Positions 2,267 to 12,935 of a stretch of DNA of 64,000 nucleotides are shown one piece after another; position 1 is the first letter of the stretch; each line of letters starts with the position of its first letter. Under the pieces are notes generated by a model. The model made no database searches. It saw only the letters and a list, made by a program, of their open reading frames with translations, and had not been told where the DNA came from. Made by a program: the position numbers and the translations under genes. Source of the stretch: Hormiphora californensis (Eukaryota; Animalia; Ctenophora); the NCBI GenBank assembly GCA_020137815.1, contig CM035353.1, positions 3,596,001 to 3,660,000 on the forward strand. The letters are read 5' to 3'.

Positions 2267-5200
2267 ATGGCTATCGATCCGCGATCGAAAGGGGTAAGGT
2301 CATCATATAATTATATATACATATTTAACTAGCAAAAATCCCTTTATAAGTTTAATATTTTCTTGTTGAGACATGCAGTGTTCTCAAAGCTTCAAATTAT
2401 TGATTTAGTACCATTATGTATCGCTTTTTTTATTACATGACCCCCTTTCAGACATTTTTGGAGCGCCTTGACCAGGGACCTGTCATTGGTGATGGTGGAT
2501 TTGTGTTTGCCCTGGAGAAACGGGGGGTGGTGAAAGCTGGACCTTGGACTCCAGAAGCTGTAATTGAACATCCTGAGGTAAAAGTTGGTTACAAAGTCAC
2601 CCCTTTTATTGCATGAGCAATAAAAACAGAGGGGTAATTTCATTACCAAAGGTAAACGCAATGCGTTCTTTTCTCACGTTCTTTACTATAATACTTTGAA
2701 GCGTCATGATGCCTGAATGGCTGATATTGGGGTTGGAATTAACCCCGCATACTGCACTATGTGTTGCACGTTTTGGGTGAGGTTCGTGTTCGAGGGAATG
2801 CAAAAAGGATATTTGCCATTTGGCCAAATTTGGGTAAAAAATAATTTTTAGAATTTCAAAACCTTTCTATCAGGCTGTAAGGCAGCTGCACACAGAGTTT
2901 GTCCGAGCCGGAAGTGACGTGTGTCAGGCATACACATACTACGGGAGCGAGGACAAGCTAACTAATCGGGGGAACCACGCTGGCCAATATGGGGTAAGTT
3001 AATAGGGGGAACCACGCCGCGCTGGTGCGCTGGCCAATACGGGGCTATATATGGATGGGAACAACCTATATACAGGGTGGGCCAGAAACATGGAGCCACT
3101 TGGAGATAAAAGTTGGAAAAATACAATACTCTCTCTATTGTACGGATCCAAATTTCAACGTGTTACCTTGTCAGTTGACAGGCTGATAATTGTTAGGAAA
3201 GGGTGACTCTCTGTCGATCTCAATCCTCAGGGGACACTTTTTCTAGTCAATAGACCGTGAAAATTACACTGTACATGGGAGAGGGCAATTTTGCATTTGC
3301 GGGCATCGCACTATAATAGACGCAGTACCCACGTACTATAGACGCATTATAAACGCATTATAAACGCATTATAGACGCATTATAGACACACGCAATATAG
3401 ACGCAATTTCGTAAGCAGCACTATAGACGCAATATAGACGCATTATAACAGCAATATAAACGCATTTTTATAGACGCGACGCAGTATAGCCGCATTATAG
3501 GCGCACTACCCACCCCAAAATCACCTTATAGACGCACTATAGACGCATTATAGACTGACTATAGCAGCACCATAAACGCTACATAGACCCATATAGACGC
3601 ATTATAGAAGCATTATAGACGCAAATCGCTTTTTATAGACGCCGCGTCTATAAAAAACGTGCTTTTTTAAGAAGCACTATAGACGTACTCAGACGCACGC
3701 TGCGATATTTGAGGCGCAGTTGGGCGAACTATAAACGCATTTTTGTCGCATATAAAAGGAAGCAGTATACTATATATATATATATATAAACGCATTATAG
3801 ACGCATTATAGCCGCATGTGTGCGAAATCGATAAAGACGCAATATAGACGCAAAATAAGAAGGAGACATGGAGAGAGAGGGATCAGGGAGGGAGAGGGAA
3901 GGAGAGGGAAGGAGAGGGAAGGAGAGGGAAGGAGATGGAAAGATGGAAAGATGGAAAGAGAGGGAGGGAGGGATACAGGGACAGAGACAGAGACAGACGG
4001 ATAAAGACCTGAGACAGAGGGACAGAGTAAGATGGAGAGAGAGAGTAAGATGGAGAGATAGTGAGATAGGGACGGAGTGAGACAGAAAAAGACAGAGATG
4101 GAAACAAACGGACAGAGACAGACGGACAAACACGCGCTTACTATCTCCCTCTCTGTCTCACTCTCTTTCCATCTTAATCTCTCTGCATCATACTTTGTCC
4201 GTCTGTATCAGATCTGTGTCCATCTGTCTCAGTCTGATCTGTCTCTGTATCCCTCCCTCCCTCTCCCTCTTTCCCTCTCCTTCCCTCTCCCTCCCTCCTT
4301 CCTTCCCTCCCTCCTTCCTTCCCTCCCTCCCTCTTCCTCCCTCTCTTTCTCATTTTGCGTCTATATTGCGTCTATATTGCGTCTTTATCGATTTCGCACA
4401 CATGCGGCTATAATGCGTCTATAATGCGTCTATACTGCTTCCTTTTATATGCGACAAAAATGCGTTTATAGTTCGCCCAACTGCGCCTCAAATATCGCAG
4501 CGTGCGTCTGAGTACGTCTATAGTGCTTCTTAAAAAAGCACGTTTTTTATAGACGCGGCGTCTATAAAAAGCGATTTGCGTCTATAATGCTTCTATCATG
4601 CGTCTATATGGGTCTATGTAGCGTTTATGGTGCTGCTATAGTCAGTCTATAATGCGTCTATAGTGCGTCTATAAGGCGATTTTGGGGTGGGTAGTGCGCC
4701 TATAATGCGGCTATACTGCGTCGCGTTTATAAAAATGCGTTTATATTGCTGTTATAATGCGCTTATACTGCGTCTATACTGCTGCTTACGAAAGTCCGTC
4801 TATATTGCGTGTGTCTATACTGCGTCTATAATGCGTCTATAATGCGTCTATAATGCGTTTATAGTACGTGGGTACTGCGTCTATAGTGCGATGACCGCAA
4901 ATGCCAAATTGCCCATGGGAGAGTGGACTGTATTGACACCTTAGTTATCTACAAGTGGCTCCATGTTTCTGGCCCACCCTGTATTATTGTTGTTCCCATG
5001 TCTATCTCTCCATACAAAAACTCATTATCACAATAACTTGATCACCACACAGGTTTACAAGGTGAATGCTGCTGCCTGTGAGATTGCCGGGAGTGTCGCT
5101 AAACCAGCAGGTTGCCTTATTGCAGGGGGAGTTGGTCAGATACCAGCGTACCTTACCACCAGGGACAAGGAGAAGGTGAAGGCTGAAGTGAGGAAACAGT

Positions 5201-8200
5201 TGGAAGTGTTCAAGGATTATAAAGTGGATCTGATGATCAGTGAGGTAGGTGTTAACAAACTCGATCAATATGTAGTTGATCTATACAAATTAAAAACGAC
5301 AGCAGTTTTTAAGGTCTATACACATGTTTTATGGTGCCCCACGATGAGGCACCAATCATCAGTAGACAAAGATCAAAATGAGAATGAATTGGGATAAAGT
5401 ATGACTCCTTCATAAAAACAGTCAGTCAAACGTTCCTAGTTAGAATTAGTAGCTCCATTTCACGTCACATCTTCGTATCTTGGACCTCTAGATTCCCCAG
5501 TTTCAAAGTACGTCAACCATTTCCCTTTCTTGGAGTGTGTAATCTGTATTCCATTTTGATCATTGTTCCTCAAAACCAGACGTCGTACGTGTCCTCAGAT
5601 CCACAAGAGTGCTCAACCACAAATAAATTGAGGGAGCATTGCATTATAGCGAGTTTAGTAGATTGATGACAAGATAGATATCCTGTCCCTTGGTCCGAGA
5701 TCAACAGAGTGCTCTAGCACGGGGTTAGCCGGCGAGCAGTTTATACAAATTAAAAACGACAGCAGTTTTTAAGGTCTATACACATGTTTCATGGTGCCCC
5801 ACGAGGAGGCACCAATCATCAGTAGACAAAGATCAAAATGAGAATGAATTGGGATAAAGTATGACTCCTTCATAAAAACAGTCAGTCAAACGTTCCTAGT
5901 TAGAATTAGTAGCTCCATTTCACGTCACATCTTCGTATCTTGGACCTCTAGATTCCCCAGTTTCAAAGTACGTCAACCATTTCCCTTTCTTGGAGTGTGT
6001 AATCTGTATTCCATTTTGATCATTGTTCCTCAAAACCAGACGTCGTACGTGTCCTCAGATCCACAAGAGTGCTCAACCACAAATAAATTGAGGGAGCATT
6101 GCATTATAGCGAGTTTAGTAGATTGATGATGTAGTTGATCTATAAATAACACAAGATATTCAATATATGTTATAGTTTCATGAAAATATCGTTTAAAATC
6201 GTTTCAAACTTTTCAACACTACTTTAAACAAATTAATTTGAGGATTCGTTTCGCTGCCCCTCGTTAATCCTTCTGAGACTTCTGTTTATCCCCTCTTTTA
6301 AGACAAGACAAGAGAAGACGTGTCTGGTGTTTTTCTAAATAAACAGATCTCAGAGGACCTCGTTGGGTTATAACCAAGGACGCCAAGACTTGCAAGGAAC
6401 GGTTCCTCGCGCCTCTATTTACAGGACAGGATGGCGGGTGTGGCTACCCAGAATGTTGTTATTACGTGCAAGCAGGATTTGAAAGGTGAGCTCCTTACCA
6501 TGAGTTTATCTGAAAAGTGTAAAGGTATAAGCATGGCGAAATCCCTGAGTGATGGAGCAGATACCCCACCAACTGGTGGAACAGTGAAAGTATTATGGAC
6601 ACTCCTGGTGAAGATTTATCAGGCTCTTCCTGATGGCCCTGGGCACCGATGCCCAACCTCATCCTCTGAGTCTACTGTCTCTTTCACTGCTGATGACTTG
6701 AAGGAAACATTTGCCAAGTTGAAAATGGATCTACTGGACACACTACCTGATTTAGTAGCACCTAAGGTCAGTGAAATTCTGGGACCTAAATCACCGTCAC
6801 ATGAAACTACTCCGGGGTTTGGAAATGTGCCAGTGCAGTCTACCTCCCCTGCAACGCCTGTTAAGAGATATCTCAGTATCAAAGACAAAGGAGATGATGG
6901 AACCACACCAATGTGTGAGACTCGGTGGAGTAACGTACTCAAGCCTCAGGTCGAGACAGCACTGATGAGTATTCCAGTTCTGGACCTCTCTGTGAACAAG
7001 AGACGTACCCACCTGCACTTTGAAACTGATGATCAGCTTGAGAAAGCTAAGGAGAAACTTTCTCCGTTCTTAGAGGTATCTACCTTTGTGGAGAAGGAGA
7101 AGAAAAAGGACCCCCGTATTATGATCAATGATTTGGACCAGGATTTGCTTGACAATGAGCGATTGATGTCGGCAATAGTGAGTGACAAGAATGAGGAGGT
7201 GAAGAAGTTGAATGATGAAGGACATATGATCAAGGTGGTACACGTCAATAAAGCAGGGAGGTATGCAGTGGTCCAAGTAACACCGGAGGTTAGGAAGGCG
7301 ATTTCTGAGAAGAAGGACAGACTGTTCCTGAAACTTCGTCAACACGTTGTGAAGAATCGATTCTATGTGACACAGTGTTATCACTGTCAACGTTTTGGAC
7401 ACGTTGCTGGATCAATCTACTGCCCGAATAAAGACAAGTCTGCTGTTTGTGCTTTCTGCACTGGAGATCATGATACCAGACAATGCAAGGCGAAGCTCGA
7501 CAATGATGTAGGCAGAATGAAGTGTGCTAACTGTGAGCAAAGTGGAAAAGAAGATAAGAGGCATGCAAAGACCCATCCGGCATCAAGTGGTCTCTGCCCC
7601 TTCTACATCAATGCTAGAGCTAGACTCATGGAAACTACCAGTGGTGTTACGTCGGAGGAAAAAAACGTGTACCTGACGAGGGCATGGGAAGACCTGAGAA
7701 CAAAAAGGTTTGGAAGATTGGCACGTTAAATGTTCACTCAATTATGAACAAAACGTCGGGGGTTATAACCCACCTAGAAGAAAAGGGATGTGGCATATGC
7801 TTGATTCAAGAAACCTACCTTAAACAGAGTGACACGGCGAAGCTACAAGAGATCAAAGATTACGGGTGGAACATTTTCTCCTCACCAAGGGCAGAGCGTG
7901 CAGGAGGTGGCATTGGAATACTTTACAGGAATGGTATCAAGATAAAGCTGTCGCAGTCAAAGAAAAGCTTCAAGACTTTCCAGGTGCAGGAAGCCCTTAT
8001 TGGTACAGGCGATGATCTTACACGGGCTTGCAATATTTACAGGCCGCCGTACACGGGAAAGGCAAGGTACACCGAGGCACATTTTATGGAGGAATTCTCA
8101 GACTATCTGTCTGAGCTATTGACCAAAACTGGGTACCCTCTTCTAATGGGGGATTTCAACTTTCAGGTACATGATAGTACCAACTTCTATGCAAAGAAGT

Positions 8201-11200
8201 TACTGAGTCAGCTTGATTCTCTAGGATTTGAGCAGCTGGTCCCAAAACAGCCAACGCATACTCGAGGAGGAACTTTGGATCTCATTCTAAGTCAAAAGGA
8301 GAGAGTTGAGAAGATAACGTCGGTGGAAATCTTCCCTGAAGGAACTACTTCTGACCATTATCTGGTCTTAGCGGAACTGTGGATTGATACACCTAGTGGA
8401 GACTATACGTCGCGGGAGCAGGTGGAGATGTACCGAGATTTTAAAGGAATTGATGTGGAGATGTTTCGGTGTGCCTTGCAAACTGTGGACTGGACTGATG
8501 TATTAAACTCAGATTGCCCGGAACGTGCCTTGGAAATATTCGTCAGTATTATGGAGGACTTCGTTGACAAAACAGTCCCTCTTAAGAGGAGAAGAAAAAA
8601 GGGCAAGAAGGACAAGCCATGGAGAAACAATCCAGAGGTGCTCAAGGTTCTTCGTGAACGGCGGCGAGCAGAGCGTGCTTGGGAAGGGAACAAGACACCC
8701 TTGACGAAGAAACAGTTCAATGATCTCAAGAGACAGTTTGGACGGGTGGACAAGAGTGCGAGGATGGAATATGTTAAAGATGACTTGGAGCAGGCGAGAG
8801 ATGATCCTAAAGCCCTTCAGAGAAAGCTTGATCGTCTCCTTGGTAAAAGTGAGACGTTATTACCGGAAACTGGAAACAAACAGAAACTGGCTGAGGATTT
8901 TGCAGATTATTTCCATGGAAAGGTTGAGGATATTCGGACAACTGTCAGAGAGGAGCGGAATCACCTACAGAAAATACGAGCACAAAATTCCATATAAAAA
9001 TGTGTTTGACGGACTGTAACAGTCCGTCAAACACATTTTTATATGGAATTTTGTGCTCGTATTTTCTGTCAGAATCTGTATAACACGCACGTGAATTTGA
9101 GCCGCGGCGCGGCGCATCTGCACGTGCGGGTTTTCAAGAGAGAGTGAGAGACAAACGTACAACGTTAATGTGCGTCTCTCTCTTTAATCTCGCACGTGAA
9201 TTTGAGCCGCGGCGCGGCGCATCTGCACGTGCGGTTCTTCCAGATAGAAATTCCAAATAGAAATCCCAGATAGAAATTCCAAATAAAAATGTGTATGACG
9301 CCGTGTTAGAAGAGAGGAGACACATGTTCTCCAGTCCTCTCTTGAGGAATTTGAGGAAATCTCTGTGGATGAGTTGATTAGGACGGTTGTCGGTTAAGGA
9401 CATGCCGGATAAGACTTGTGATCTTGACGTAGTACCCACGTGGTTGGGCTGTCTTGAGGAACTGGCTCCAGTTCTTATGAGGATTATCAATCTGTCTCTT
9501 ACACATGCTGATGTGCCTAAGATGCTTCAGCAGGCAGTGGTGTTTCCAACGATCAAGAATTCCTATGGGGACAAGGATTCTCTGACGAACTACCGACCGG
9601 TGTCTAATTTGTCGTTTATCTCCAAACTTCTGGAGAAGGTAGTTCTTGAGCAACTCAATGCTTATCTCACCACTAATGCACTTTTGAATAAACACCAATC
9701 TGGTTATAGGGTTGGTCATAGCTGTGAGACCCTTCTCATGGGAATGTTCGATGATCTTCTTCAAGAAGTGGATAAGGGTAATGTCATTGGCCTCTTTCTC
9801 CTTGATATGAGCGCTGCCTTTGACACGGTGGATCATGGGAAGCTGAAGGATGTACTTGAGAGGAGGTTTGGAGTATGTGGATCTGCCCTAAAGTGGTTTT
9901 CTAGCTATCTTCAGTCGCGGAATTTCAGAGTCAACGTTGGTGGAAAACTTTCGAGGATTATTGAGCTTGTTTGTGGAGTTCCCCAGGGATCTCTACTGGG
10001 GCCTGTCTTGTTCCTGTTGTATATTGAAGAGCTCCAGGATCTGGTCAAGCCGTACGGTCTTCGGATCAAGTTGTATGCGGATGACTCCCAACTTTACATT
10101 AGTCTTGTACCTACGGATGAGGATAACTGGAAACTGGCCAAAACGAGGATTGAGGAGTGTTTGTCAAGTGTGAAGGCGTGGATGAACGATCACTGGCTTA
10201 AATGTAATCAAGCGAAAACTGAGTTCCTGCTTCTTGGAAAGAGCAGTGCCCTGGATAAGATGGAGTTTGTGCCTACTGTTGATTTTGGTGGTGTGGAGAT
10301 TTCTCCGATGGAGTGTACAGGAAAGACAGGAAAAACACTTGGGGTTTACTTGGACACGAATCTATCTATGGAGAGACAGGTAAACAGCGTGAAGAGGCAG
10401 TGTGGAATGCTCTTGAAGAACCTGTGGCAGGTGAATCGCAGCCTGGATATTCCTACTAAAATCCTCCTGGTCAAGCAACTGATTGTTTCTCGGCTTGACT
10501 ATTGCAACATCCTATACGCTGGATTGCCAAAGAAGCTTCTTGAAAGCCTTCAGAGGACATTGAACTCGTGTGTGAGGTTCATCTATAACCTTCATGGACA
10601 TCAAGATGACTATTCTCAGTATCTTAAGGGCACTCATATCCTACCTATGGAGCAGCGTGTGGAATTCAAGGCATGCTTGATGGCGTTTAAAATTGTTCAT
10701 AACCTAGCCCCGGATTATCTCTGTGACCAAGTACCAGTTGAGGACTTGGAGGCTGTTCGAACCACCCGTGGAACTGCAACGCCTGATCACTACAAGCTTA
10801 AGTATCCTAAGCTTTCGAGTATTAACGCCAACTCCAAGTTGAGAAGGAGGTGACCGTCTGTCTTCCTACCTGAAGTGTGGAATGAGCTCCCCCTGGAGCT
10901 TCGATCAGTTGAGTCAGTGGATCTGTTCAAGTCGAGGTTAAAGACAAGATTGTTTGTGGAAGCATTCGGAGCCAGCGGAGGATGAGGTTCCTTGTTTCGC
11001 CTGCTTTCATCAGGTATTTCGCCTAGCTTGTATTTATTTTCTTTTGGTTCTGTTTTACCGCTCATGGTAAGGTTTTTATTGGCATTTTATAGCATTTTTT
11101 CGAGTGAAGCACGAGTGGAAATGATATTTACAGACATTTTCTACCATCTAATGTGGACGTTTTTCCATCTATATCAGTCTGTTATCTCATCTGGACAGTT

Positions 11201-12935
11201 ATGTGAGCCGAGAGTGTTTAAATCAGTTTAATTCAGTGTTTTGGGTCTACCATTTTTTGATATACGTCTTTAAGTAACCGCTCAGATCGCCTCTCAGTGT
11301 CAGTGTCAGTTCTACTACACTGGCCCTGTGAGGTAAGGGCGGCATATAAATAGACATATTATTATTATTATTATTAAAACAGCAGCGGAGAGAGAATTGC
11401 CTTTAAAATGTTTTTAGTTTCCCTAGTTAGGCTCATCATCAATCTCCCCCTCCCCCTCCCCCTCCCCACCCACCCCCGACCCCCTTCCCCCTCGGCAGAC
11501 CTGTGAGACGGTTGAAGAGGTCGAATGGCATGTGGAGGCGATCAAGGAATACATGCCCGGCACCCCCATCTGTGCATCTCTCTGCATCAACGAACATACC
11601 GACATCCAGGGAGTGCCCACAGGGGAGTGTGGCGTGAGGCTGGTGAGAGCGGGGGCTGACGTTGTCGGGGTAAACTGTTATTTTGACCCATTCCAGTCCA
11701 TTAATTCTGTCAAGAAGATGATCAAAGCGGTTAAGGATGCCGGCCTCAAGGTAGGTGCACTGCATAGTGTATTCAGGTATATTATTACGAAGTACAGTCG
11801 GACCCCGATTTTGGGGCCCCCGATTTAGTGGCACCCCGATTTAGGGACAGAATTTTTCCCCCCGATATAGGAAATTAACCTTATTTGACCCCGATTTAGT
11901 GGACACCCCGATTTAGTGGACAAGAGCCTTTCCCCTGAGGGTGTCCCTAAATCGGGGTCCGACTGTATATTATTACGAAGTCACCCCTATAATAACTATT
12001 CCGTGAGCTTTTGCGGAGGGGTAATTTCATGTCCAAATGTCTCCATTAATTTCAGGCTCACTTTATGACACAGCCACTGGCAATGTGGACCCCAGATGCA
12101 GGTGTCCAGGGATTCATTGATTTACCTGAGTTCCCCCTTGCATTTGAGCCGCGGACTATAACCCGGTTTGAGGCGGCACGTTACGCACGGGAGGCTTTCG
12201 AAGCAGGTAGTTTAATAGACTTTGCACCCGAACTTTCTTCAACGATCGATCTTTTTGTGAAAAAAGATCGAGTCCTATACAAATTAATTTCATCCTAATA
12301 TTTCTTCTACCAAGTGAAATCTACCAACTATGTGTTCTGCTTGGTGACAAAGTCGTGCGCTGACAAGGGAGGGGTAACTTCGTAATACCAAATGTAACCA
12401 TGGTTACTAACAGCTGTAACCAAATGTTCTGCAGGAATCATGTTTATTGGTGGTTGCTGTGGTTTTGAATCCTATCACATTCGAGCGGTGAGCGAGGAAC
12501 TATCAGCGGAGAGAGGGGGTTACCTCCCAGCGAATTGTACTAATTGGGGAAAAGCACTGGAGCTTAACACGAAACCCTGGGTAGGTTTAAATACTGGTCC
12601 CTGATTGGCTAATAACCAATCACGTGACCTAAATAACGAGTTCTGATTGGTTGTTTACTTGTTTCGGTCGGTTCTTGGTATAACATTATTGTTACACACG
12701 TGATGTGATCACATAGCACGTTGTATTATCACAAACTTGAATGCATATATAGGGATTTAGGGGAAGCTAGGTCTAATGTCGTTTTGAATGTTCTCTGAAG
12801 TTCCAGATTCACATAAGATAATCATGCAGGTACGAGTGAGGGCAAAAAGGGAGTACTGGGAAAATCTTAGACCCGCAACCGGGAGGATATATTCTCCGAC
12901 AATGAGTAAACCTGACGATTGGGGTATTCTACCAG
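2267..12935 (+). CDS. BHMT: Betaine--homocysteine S-methyltransferase, multi-exon. Exons: 2267-2293, 2452-2577, 2874-2993, 5053-5244, 11499-11750, 12056-12206, 12435-12580, 12830-12935. A last exon probably lies in the low-quality sequence after ~13.1 kb.
   Basis: GT-AG exons join in phase. They give [72 protein letters not shown] and [16 protein letters not shown], all BHMT hallmark motifs, including the three Zn-binding Cys. Confidence 0.95.
3073..4981. mobile_element. Tc1/mariner-type MITE in BHMT intron 3 (about 270 bp without the nested insert)
   Basis: 37-bp TIR CAGGGTGGGCCAGAAACATGGAGCCACTTG(G/T)AGATAA at both ends; TA on both flanks (3071-72, 4982-83). Confidence 0.85.
3283..4914. 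mobile_element. 1.63-kb foldback element nested in the MITE above
   Basis: Termini GGGCAATTT...AAATTGCCC. TSD is ATGGGAGA (or CATGGGAGAG if the termini are GG/CC). Inverted arms of ~580 bp are built of TATAGACGCA-like subrepeats, around a GA-rich then CT-rich core. Confidence 0.85.
5314..5367 (-). ncRNA. Second hammerhead copy, core mutated (GAAA to AAAA)
   Basis: Same architecture 460 nt away, but reads ...GGCACCAT-AAAAC-ATGTGTA. The catalytic G12 is lost. Confidence 0.7.
5774..5827 (-). ncRNA. Minimal type-I hammerhead ribozyme, intact core
   Basis: Minus strand reads GTCTA-CTGATGA-T-TGGTGCCTC-CTCGT-GGGGCACCA-T-GAAAC-ATGT-GTA^TAGAC. Stem I is GTCTA/TAGAC, with the CUGAUGA box, a 9-bp stem II, GAAA, a minimal stem III with palindromic ACATGT, and a GUA cleavage triplet. 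Confidence 0.8.
6201..6242 (+). other. Genomic copy of the ctenophore spliced-leader exon, fused to the LINE 5' end
   Basis: GTTTCAAACTTTTCAACACTACTTTAAACAAATTAATTTGAG matches, from memory, the cydippid ctenophore SL ending in AATTAATTTGAG. It is followed by GATTCG rather than a GT donor, so it is a processed leader and not an SL-RNA gene. Confidence 0.8.
6431..7729 (+). CDS. LINE ORF1, gag-like nucleic-acid-binding protein with three zinc knuckles (432 aa)
   Basis: [19 protein letters not shown] and CANC..H..C motifs, directly upstream of APE/RT. Confidence 0.88.
   Translation: MAGVATQNVVITCKQDLKGELLTMSLSEKCKGISMAKSLSDGADTPPTGGTVKVLWTLLVKIYQALPDGPGHRCPTSSSESTVSFTADDLKETFAKLKMDLLDTLPDLVAPKVSEILGPKSPSHETTPGFGNVPVQSTSPATPVKRYLSIKDKGDDGTTPMCETRWSNVLKPQVETALMSIPVLDLSVNKRRTHLHFETDDQLEKAKEKLSPFLEVSTFVEKEKKKDPRIMINDLDQDLLDNERLMSAIVSDKNEEVKKLNDEGHMIKVVHVNKAGRYAVVQVTPEVRKAISEKKDRLFLKLRQHVVKNRFYVTQCYHCQRFGHVAGSIYCPNKDKSAVCAFCTGDHDTRQCKAKLDNDVGRMKCANCEQSGKEDKRHAKTHPASSGLCPFYINARARLMETTSGVTSEEKNVYLTRAWEDLRTKRFGRLAR
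7684..10985 (+). pseudogene. LINE ORF2 (AP endonuclease + reverse transcriptase), disrupted
   Basis: APE motifs TLNV, IQET, IYRPP, MGDFN, TLDLI, SDH. RT motifs [30 protein letters not shown]. Broken by a MITE plus inverted arm (8967-9305), a 7-bp insertion (~9389-9395) and a premature TGA at 10851; the frame continues as [20 protein letters not shown] to 10985. Confidence 0.9.
9020..9305. mobile_element. 286-bp MITE inserted in LINE ORF2
   Basis: Near-identical reverse-complement copy of the same length at 45147-45432. Imperfect TIR CAGTCCGTCA / CACGGCGTCA-TACACATTTTTA. Confidence 0.85.
11795..11965. mobile_element. MITE with TIR CAGTCGGACCCCGATTT, TA-flanked
   Basis: Intact TIRs. Other copies at 40130-40292 and 45557-45707; partial copies near 15470, 30730, 30970, 43280, 57190 and 62895. 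Confidence 0.85.

Follow-up and report, generated by a model that had tools for sequence, protein, structure and literature searches.

In this study, which was based on a 64,000-nucleotide stretch of the genome of the ctenophore Hormiphora californensis (assembly GCA_020137815.1, contig CM035353.1, positions 3,596,001 to 3,660,000 of the forward strand; hereafter the window) and on related copies across the genome, we describe a LINE retrotransposon that begins with the spliced leader (SL) of its host. We put the probability that this LINE arose by reverse transcription of an RNA carrying the host SL at about 85%. Retrotransposition of an SL trans-spliced RNA, which had already been proposed in a preliminary description of the window, is well supported by the identity of the SL, by the junction that the element shares with its relatives and by the missing SL intron, and an SL-capped RNA was very probably the transposition intermediate. 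Our literature searches turned up no earlier description of animal genomes with SL-headed retrotransposons.

The element and its insertion site

The features of the element and its borders, in window coordinates, are as follows.

6193-6198, + strand: candidate upstream target-site duplication (TSD), TTAAAA, with two extra bases, TC (6199-6200), before the SL
6201-11375, + strand: LINE copy with apurinic-type endonuclease (APE) and reverse transcriptase (RT), comprising SL head, 5' UTR, ORF1, broken ORF2 and 3' UTR with (ATT)n tail
6201-6242, + strand: integrated SL head, corresponding to nt 2-43 of the host SL exon (43 nt)
6243-6430, + strand: LINE 5' UTR, 188 nt, beginning at the SL exon boundary
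6256-6368, + strand: conserved long hairpin in the 5' UTR, arms at about 6256-6289 and 6339-6368
6431-7729, + strand: ORF1 (432 aa); three CCHC-like zinc knuckles lie close to the C terminus
7684-8997, + strand: N-terminal part of ORF2, apurinic-type endonuclease (Pfam Exo_endo_phos, E = 2.2e-13); the frame stops within the insert
8971-9305, no strand: 335-bp foldback insert that breaks ORF2, not in sister copies
9387-10853, + strand: reverse transcriptase part of ORF2 (Pfam RVT_1, E = 4.9e-28)
10854-11375, + strand: 3' UTR; its (ATT)n tail spans about 11357-11375
11374-11379, + strand: candidate downstream TSD, TTAAAA, overlapping the end of the tail

The 42-mer at the head occurs exactly once in the window, on the + strand, with 0 occurrences expected by chance. 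Its initial recognition as the ctenophore SL was confirmed, as it equals nt 3-44 of the published H. californensis SL (PMC8527503) and nt 2-43 of the exon in the 16 SL RNA genes of the genome itself. The match and the junction are exact, but the exon proved to be 43 nt long, and the window head holds 42 of these, the first base (A) being missing. As first described, the head is followed by GATTCG and not by GT. The junction GAG/GATTCG falls at the last base of the exon, and SL-intron sequence is absent at both flanks of the element. The locus is thus not an SL RNA gene, since a LINE UTR follows the SL at 6243 and the upstream flank is unrelated; it has the make-up of a retrocopy of an SL trans-spliced RNA, i.e., an intron-free exon that is joined precisely at its 3' end and lies between unrelated genomic flanks.

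An APE domain followed by an RT domain in ORF2, with the 335-bp insert between them, assigns the element to the APE-type non-LTR (LINE) retrotransposons, and the weak PDB matches of the RT part were the reverse transcriptases of R2 and LINE-1 ORF2p. No Pfam domain above threshold was found in ORF1. Its 23 homologues in public protein collections (43-96% identity) are all unnamed, and a metagenome scan that followed them returned a single irrelevant fragment. With regard to the CR1/L2 placement suggested in the preliminary description, ORF1 has CCHC-like knuckles and no Pfam match, and an (ATT)n tail would suit this clade without being diagnostic of it. ORF1s of the PHD or GDSL-esterase kind are present in other SL-headed families of this genome. 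The 3' end is shared at 96-100% identity with about 18 other copies, which are 5'-truncated; about 15 copies at this level of identity begin at query positions 3064-4714, and all of these reach the 3' end of the element. Such 5' truncation is typical of LINE insertion. Sister copies match query positions 2424-2728 and then 3064-5103 with no sequence between, which is the basis for calling the 335 bp an insert; its repeats are a perfect inverted one of 51 nt (8967-9017 / 9019-9069) and a direct one of 58 nt. The term "full-length", which had been applied to this copy, therefore holds for its two ends, which are complete, but not for its interior, where ORF2 is broken.

Host exons at 4945-5298 and 11427-11825 (+ strand) match Pfam S-methyl_trans profile positions 65-143 and 143-219, respectively. 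Because consecutive parts of one profile lie on the + strand on either side, the element occupies an intron of a BHMT-like gene, as stated in the preliminary description, and has the same orientation as that gene. The 5' flank at 5880-6129 belongs to a 460-bp tandem-repeat family, and 6130-6200 and the 3' flank are unique in the genome. Neither an empty allele nor a paralogous empty site was found in the assembly. The TTAAAA repeat is compatible with a TSD and is treated here as a candidate only; a TSD scan of short SL-headed elements in the fetched loci gave no signal above control.

Spliced-leader heads across the genome

True SL RNA genes were found at 16 loci only in the H. californensis genome, and they form a class separate from the heads. 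Each has the layout ..CCATCAGC, the exon A-GTTTC..TTTGAG, GTAAGCTGAG.., then the Sm-like CCUUUUGG and a 3' hairpin, and they share a conserved upstream block, ..GGTCCGAGACTCCATCAGC (also read as ..ACTCCATCAGC). Genome-wide, 475 SL copies were counted at three or fewer mismatches, of which about 3% are SL genes. The copies sampled in the fetched loci fell into 32 clusters by downstream sequence, only one of which was the SL gene, and an ORF commonly begins 4-140 nt downstream of the SL. Most SL copies in this genome are thus retroelement heads and not leader genes.

For the window LINE, the preliminary description had asked whether other full-length copies start with the SL at the same junction after unrelated upstream flanks. 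Its 5' UTR has 38 genomic matches, and the SL was found at the identical junction in 36 of the 37 copies that reach the 5' end, the remaining one not being checkable. These copies belong to at least six lineages, have unrelated flanks and show ragged 5' truncation; none of the checkable ones has a longer non-SL 5' region or any other 5' extension, and no SL-less source copy was found for any lineage. Among 29 heads that were chosen through their UTR, nine had 43 SL nt, four had 42, six had 41, two had 40 and eight had 19-39. The commonest class in the family is therefore the 43-nt head, and the majority are complete or short by one to three bases. Of 55 heads, 28 have an A immediately before the 42-mer, the background frequency being 29%. 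Among lineages A-E the SL is 100% identical, whereas identity is 41-93% in the adjoining UTR and 34-64% at the beginning of ORF1; SL identity is down to 78% in L050, which is an old copy. This pattern speaks against passive inheritance of the SL. Several lineages are active and all of them are SL-headed.

Sixteen occurrences of a variant head, which differs by three A-to-G changes, were counted. The variant is found on nine of nine heads of one family, on at least four of eight of another and on none of the 36 of the window LINE superfamily. No SL gene encodes it: there is no GTAAGC gene, and all 16 genes are standard. Since the variant is family-specific and lacks a matching SL gene, heads can be inherited from DNA copies. 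The variant families also tolerate SL substitutions, so selection alone is an unlikely cause of the invariance of the SL elsewhere. Within the fetched loci, no SL-less homologues of the post-SL sequences, which could have shown natural acceptors, were found. In several families a CTGATGA..GAAAC motif comes after the SL; a hammerhead ribozyme was considered for it and was rejected, as Rfam gave no support at the gathering score or at E <= 1. The Rfam output consisted only of generic long-hairpin "miRNA" matches, which are due to head-to-head SL pairs.

The 5' UTR behaves as a module. Between the window copy and family B, identity is 90-100% in the UTR and about 71% in the ORFs; similarly, lineages g1 (11 copies) and g2 (five copies), both SL-headed, have UTRs that are 100% identical and ORF1s that are 73-85% identical. 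RNAalifold was run on eight sequences from different lineages, and in the resulting hairpin consensus 95% of the cells are paired, compared with 36-53% in slid controls, with compensatory changes at eight pairs and G-U pairs tolerated. A covarying 5' UTR hairpin, together with an SL+UTR module common to diverged LINE bodies, is new to this analysis. The hairpin probably has a necessary role in the RNA, in either the renewal or the inheritance of the head, both of which are discussed below.

In RNA contigs, the SMART oligo is followed by G, A and GTTTC, which marks the A as the first SL base. Contigs from RNA libraries also carry other sequence ahead of a nearly full SL (loose ends at 6202-6208), as read-through across integrated heads would give. 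In environmental RNA runs, the SL depth was very high and the depth of LINE fragments low, and no contig bridging 6242/6243 was present among the contigs listed for these runs, in which contigs break at the highly repeated SL.

Origin and transmission of the head

In the mechanism that we propose, the host would trans-splice its SL onto the LINE RNA, and the reverse transcriptase of the element would copy this RNA to or near the capped end, so that an SL would be left on each insertion. As no lineage has an SL-less source, the SL-headed copies themselves must be the sources, and two routes of transmission may be envisaged. In renewal, a transcript would start upstream, for example as the pre-mRNA of a host gene with a copy in sense in one of its introns, and would be trans-spliced at the terminal AG of the integrated SL (..TTTGAG/G), the only AG that the SL contains; a fresh capped SL would then replace the old head. 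In inheritance, transcription would start from the first base of the head and would be directed by the SL and/or by the conserved 5' UTR. The sense orientation of the window copy within a host intron is context in favour of the proposed mechanism. Renewal at the same junction is likely to have taken place at least occasionally in the superfamily, and it is also somewhat likely that heads are transmitted without it. The family-specific variant argues against renewal in every cycle. G at -3 is the least favoured base of 3' splice sites, and an acceptor derived from the SL would be GAG, which likewise counts against renewal. So does a better-looking TTTCAG, which in one group of families lies 6 nt past the junction and is not used.

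The preliminary description had further suggested that the family may rely on host trans-splicing in place of a promoter. The invariance of the SL across diverged lineages agrees with this suggestion, while the inherited variant heads and the conserved structured 188-nt 5' UTR, which could house a promoter, do not. LINEs usually keep internal promoters in the 5' UTR. A bolder proposal, which we put forward tentatively and hold to be less likely than not, is that the integrated SL is a self-renewing portable 5' end, that the spliceosome cuts the element out of host pre-mRNA and that whole families of ctenophore retroelements could be promoterless. A sense copy in any transcribed region would then offer its SL/UTR junction as a trans-splice acceptor, and the cis element enabling this junction would be the structured 5' UTR module, which LINE lineages have exchanged.

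The most serious alternative concerns the renewal step only and not the origin of the head. It is possible, although we would not bet on it, that the SL was captured once or rarely through trans-splicing in an ancestor and has since been the element's own. Transcription would then begin at the head's first base under an internal promoter located in the SL, the 5' UTR or both, and trans-splicing would no longer be required. The variant head without a matching gene would be expected in this case, as would a UTR that is more conserved than the ORFs and common to diverged bodies in the manner of a promoter module, and the SL RNA genes of nematodes are known to have intragenic promoter elements. 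No tandem SL-SL relics like those of dinoflagellates were found, nor was an SL joined at the acceptor-like TTTACAG/GACAGGATG upstream of the ATG. However, the SL is identical at all 42 positions among lineages with UTR differences of up to 59%, the upstream block conserved in the SL genes is not present on the retroelement heads, and the conservation of the UTR takes the form of RNA-type covariation with G-U pairs.

The direction might also be reversed, the 42-mer being an ancestral retroelement terminus from which the host SL gene was derived. The element copies of the SL do far outnumber the SL genes, but more than 30 unrelated downstream sequences have exactly the SL exon in common, ending at the exon boundary; within one family the junction is shifted by an AG-bounded 4 nt (L023 vs L028); and the SL is carried by at least 56% of host Iso-Seq reads (PMC8527503), all of which makes such an origin very improbable. 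The likelihood of a one-off chimera, in which the RT switched templates from the LINE RNA to the SL RNA or an SL-bearing mRNA as in U6-L1, is negligible: LINE reverse transcriptases do switch templates at 5' ends and mosaic copies occur in this family, yet 36 of 37 copies in at least six lineages have the identical junction, and the SL intron of about 90 nt, which a switch onto the SL RNA would bring along, is wholly missing, so the join at the exon boundary fits splicing and not such a switch. The same negligible weight is given to the SL as target DNA beside which the LINE inserted site-specifically, since, although SL genes are targeted by non-LTR elements in trypanosomatids and nematodes, as cited in PMC4640811 and PMC3636483, the endonuclease here is of the APE and not the restriction-like type, the downstream flank is a unique intron of the BHMT-like gene and neither SL intron nor the rest of another SL-headed element, the heads show ragged 5' truncation as in retrocopies, and all 16 SL genes examined are uninterrupted and have the standard exon.

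Known systems and implications

A close parallel to retrotransposition of an SL trans-spliced RNA is found in the DinoSL-relict retrogenes of dinoflagellates (PMC5585692, PMC6050394, PMC8045281), in which SL trans-spliced RNA was likewise reverse transcribed and integrated, leaving at the 5' end a DNA copy of an SL that ends in AG. Those relicts are host genes and not families of autonomous retroelements, whereas in H. californensis entire LINE lineages invariably start with the SL; moreover, the DinoSL relicts are stacked in tandem through upstream re-splicing, a pattern that has no counterpart among the heads described here. In Hydra, about 30% of the TE Iso-Seq reads carry an SL (PMC12220107), and host trans-splicing therefore acts on TE RNAs, which resembles the situation proposed for H. 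californensis. The observation is made at the RNA level only, and the passage of that report concerned with it describes neither genomic TE copies that start with an SL nor an SL-capped transposition intermediate.

CRE1/SLACS/CZAR and NeSL-1 are, as here, non-LTR elements that are physically linked to an SL. They have a restriction-like endonuclease and insert in SL RNA genes, the SL being the flanking target, whereas the window LINE has an APE endonuclease and is dispersed, with the SL within the retrotransposed unit. U6/L1 and other LINE-mediated chimeric retrocopies similarly place a host small-RNA sequence 5' of a LINE; however, they arise by template switching, contain the whole snRNA and have variable junctions, whereas the window LINE has the exon alone, with the junction fixed at the splice site. 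Internal promoters (L1, jockey and Pr77 of L1Tc) and 5' HDV-like ribozymes (R2 and L1Tc; PMC1874656, PMC3185411) solve the same problem of a defined, heritable 5' end in an element whose upstream promoters are lost when it transposes. In the window LINE this end is instead a host-made exon, added by the spliceosome, while L1Tc transcripts have been described as unspliced.

These results reinterpret a published feature of the H. californensis genome: the approximately 500-700 "leader sequences" of the assembly are almost all retroelement heads, with 16 SL RNA genes among them, which affects gene models with a common "first exon". The SL heads are natural tags of full-length, cap-reaching retrocopies, and the variant heads together with the swapped SL+UTR module offer a handle on whether the integrated SL serves as a splice acceptor or transcription begins there. 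Next to internal promoters and 5' ribozymes, host trans-splicing would be a third way for LINEs to acquire a 5' end that is both defined and capped.

The spliced leader and its genes

The 42-mer that opens the LINE (GTTTCAAAC...AATTTGAG, 6201-6242) occurs once within the window, with no occurrence expected by chance. The preliminary description had named it as the ctenophore spliced leader (SL), and this was confirmed by its match to the exon of the SL genes in the genome and to the published leader of H. californensis, which is printed as GA plus this 42-mer and was found on at least 56% of the Iso-Seq reads; the same authors tallied 718 leader sequences in Hormiphora, leaving their nature unstated (PMC8527503). 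In the genome searched (110.7 Mb, 45 contigs), the 42-mer occurs 475 times at three mismatches or fewer. True SL genes were found at 16 loci: the SL exon runs into GTAAGCTGAG, and an Sm-like CCUUUUGG and a terminal hairpin come next. All 16 share the upstream block ..GGTCCGAGACTCCATCAGC. They are arranged as head-to-head pairs on contigs C5, C9 and C11, a single gene on C12 and a tandem array on C13. The paired genes outside the array are divergent and 530-610 bp apart. The array (C13:3181500-3195400; loci L091 and L094) consists of approximately 745-bp units, several of which carry single-nucleotide deletions in exon or intron and may be pseudogenes or homopolymer errors. Because an A precedes GTTTC in the SL genes as well as in the RNA contigs that retain the SMART oligo, which read ..GTACGGGG-A-GTTTC, the mature SL is 43 nt long and begins with A; the window copy has 42 of these 43 nt.

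The LINE and its constant 5' end

Features of the LINE and its host gene
4945-5298, +, host exon
6201-6242, SL head
6431-7729, ORF1 with three CCHC-like knuckles and no Pfam domain
7684-8997, ORF2, APE endonuclease
8971-9305, 335-bp insert that cuts ORF2, absent from the sister copies
9387-10853, ORF2, reverse transcriptase
to 11375, 3' UTR and (ATT)n tail
11427-11825, +, host exon

On the + strand, the two host exons correspond to adjoining segments of the homocysteine S-methyltransferase profile, which places the LINE within an intron of a BHMT-like gene, in sense orientation. It had been described as full-length, which is correct in that it is 5'-complete, with ORF1 from 6431 and a tail to 11375, but not for ORF2, which is split by the insert. 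The insert is foldback-like: it contains a perfect inverted repeat of 51 nt (8967-9017 and 9019-9069) as well as a direct repeat of 58 nt in two copies (9086-9143 and 9191-9248), both of which include GAATTTGAG, the final eight bases of the SL. The 460-bp-period tandem-repeat family at 5270-6129 (query 5880-6129) stops 71 bp short of the LINE on its upstream side and forms arrays on many chromosomes at 91-100% identity.

Within its own subfamily, no other member is 5'-complete: some 15 further copies (96-100% identity) are 5'-truncated. Directly after the 42-mer, GATTCG opens a 188-nt 5' UTR, which has 38 matches in the genome. Of the fetched loci, 29 extend to the 5' end; in every one of these the SL adjoined the same UTR base, preceding GATCCG or GTTCCG, and their upstream flanks were unrelated to one another. 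Adjacent genome coordinates placed the SL at the junction in seven further copies. Thus, when copies of 6243-6430 were collected, the suggestion that the SL marks the family's 5' end held in 36 of 37, the remaining copy not being checkable, and no other 5' extension replaced the SL among the copies examined. The SL was 43 nt long in nine heads, 42 in four, 41 in six, 40 in two and 19-39 in eight, a raggedness that resembles that of LINE 5' ends. The base preceding a complete 42-mer was A in 28 of 55 heads compared to a background of 29%.

The UTR contains a long hairpin (arms approximately 6256-6289 with 6339-6368). Across eight sequences of different lineages, 95% of the cells were paired, compared to 36-53% in slid controls, and eight pairs had compensatory changes with G-U pairs tolerated, a pattern that points to a function in the sense RNA. 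The SL and UTR module (approximately the first 215 nt; L032-L049) is 100% identical between g1 and g2, two multicopy lineages whose ORF1s share only 73-85% identity, and it matches the module of the window element at 95%, with ORFs at about 71%; L044 and L045 are further mosaics. Either bodies have exchanged the module, then, or selection on it is very strong, and the contrast with ORF1 points to recombination, or template switching, close to where ORF1 begins.

Origin of the head and other SL-headed families

The origin of the head was attributed to splicing. Template switching onto the SL RNA would also join the SL to the element, but the SL is joined precisely at its exon boundary and the SL intron is wholly absent, which counts against it. 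The APE-type endonuclease and the 3' flank, a unique intron in which no SL-gene sequence occurs, speak against targeting of SL genes as in CRE or NeSL. Dinoflagellates have SL-tagged retrogenes (PMC5585692, PMC6050394), and transposable element transcripts bearing the SL are known from Hydra (PMC12220107); our literature search found no account of retrotransposon families whose genomic copies open with the SL.

The fetched loci formed 32 downstream clusters behind the SL, only one of which was the SL gene. In the SL-headed loci, an ORF mostly starts 4-140 nt past the SL; some ORFs have PHD or GDSL-esterase domains and one has a reverse transcriptase. PHD and GDSL-esterase domains are features of CR1-like ORF1s. 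In one family, the first ORF (L073:1582-3024:+) combines an AlkB-like 2OG-Fe(II) oxygenase (E = 4e-14) with a GDSL esterase; to our knowledge, the former is unusual. Within the family of L023 and L028, two junctions are offset by ATAG, as expected from alternative acceptors. One SL-headed element is followed, about 270 bp downstream, by a full-length metazoan SRP (7SL) RNA gene (L022:1815-2110:-, 240 bits), and at four loci two SL heads abut head to head, forming long inverted repeats. Several families have a hammerhead-core-like CTGATGA-stem-GAAAC 0-6 nt after the SL (L001, L002, L007, L009, L014, L015, L019, L022, L024; junction near position 1542 when oriented), for which the Rfam hammerhead models gave no match even at E <= 1; at the gathering score, they had no match across the window.

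Renewal or inheritance of the head

The head could be renewed by trans-splicing of a fresh SL in each cycle or inherited as a DNA copy. No SL-less source copy was found in any of at least six lineages, so the source copies must themselves be SL-headed. Lineages A-E share an SL of 100% identity, next to a UTR at 41-93% and an ORF1 start at 34-64%, and in the old copy L050 the SL has decayed to 78% identity; together, these would favour renewal. The only AG inside the 42-mer is its terminal one, and for renewal at the same junction the acceptor could only be this AG of the integrated SL. No tandem SL relics were found, and an acceptor-like TTTACAG before the ATG was never used as an SL junction.

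Four marine RNA runs were analysed as contigs, with DNA carry-over possible. In them, SL coverage was very deep, with many different sequences attached to the SL, and the coverage of LINE fragments was low. No contig among those listed bridged the SL-LINE junction, contigs tending to break at highly repeated words. Some had other sequence ahead of an almost entire SL, which is what read-through across integrated heads would produce.

A variant head with three A-to-G changes (GTTTCAAGCTTTTCGGCACTAC..) was found at 16 genomic places, including C2:7458902 and C1:5373087; L073 and L085 are loci with this head. It is carried by nine of nine heads of the family in which GACGCA follows the SL, at least four of eight where GTCTATGACC follows and none of 36 in the LINE superfamily under study; intermediate and standard-type heads also seem to be present in the GTCTAT family. 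None of the SL genes of the genome encodes it. Such confinement to a few families, with no matching SL gene, would favour inheritance; speculatively, all three changes being A-to-G would be consistent with editing of an RNA template that was double-stranded. Renewal and inheritance probably both operate, with a putative transcription source and a putative acceptor.
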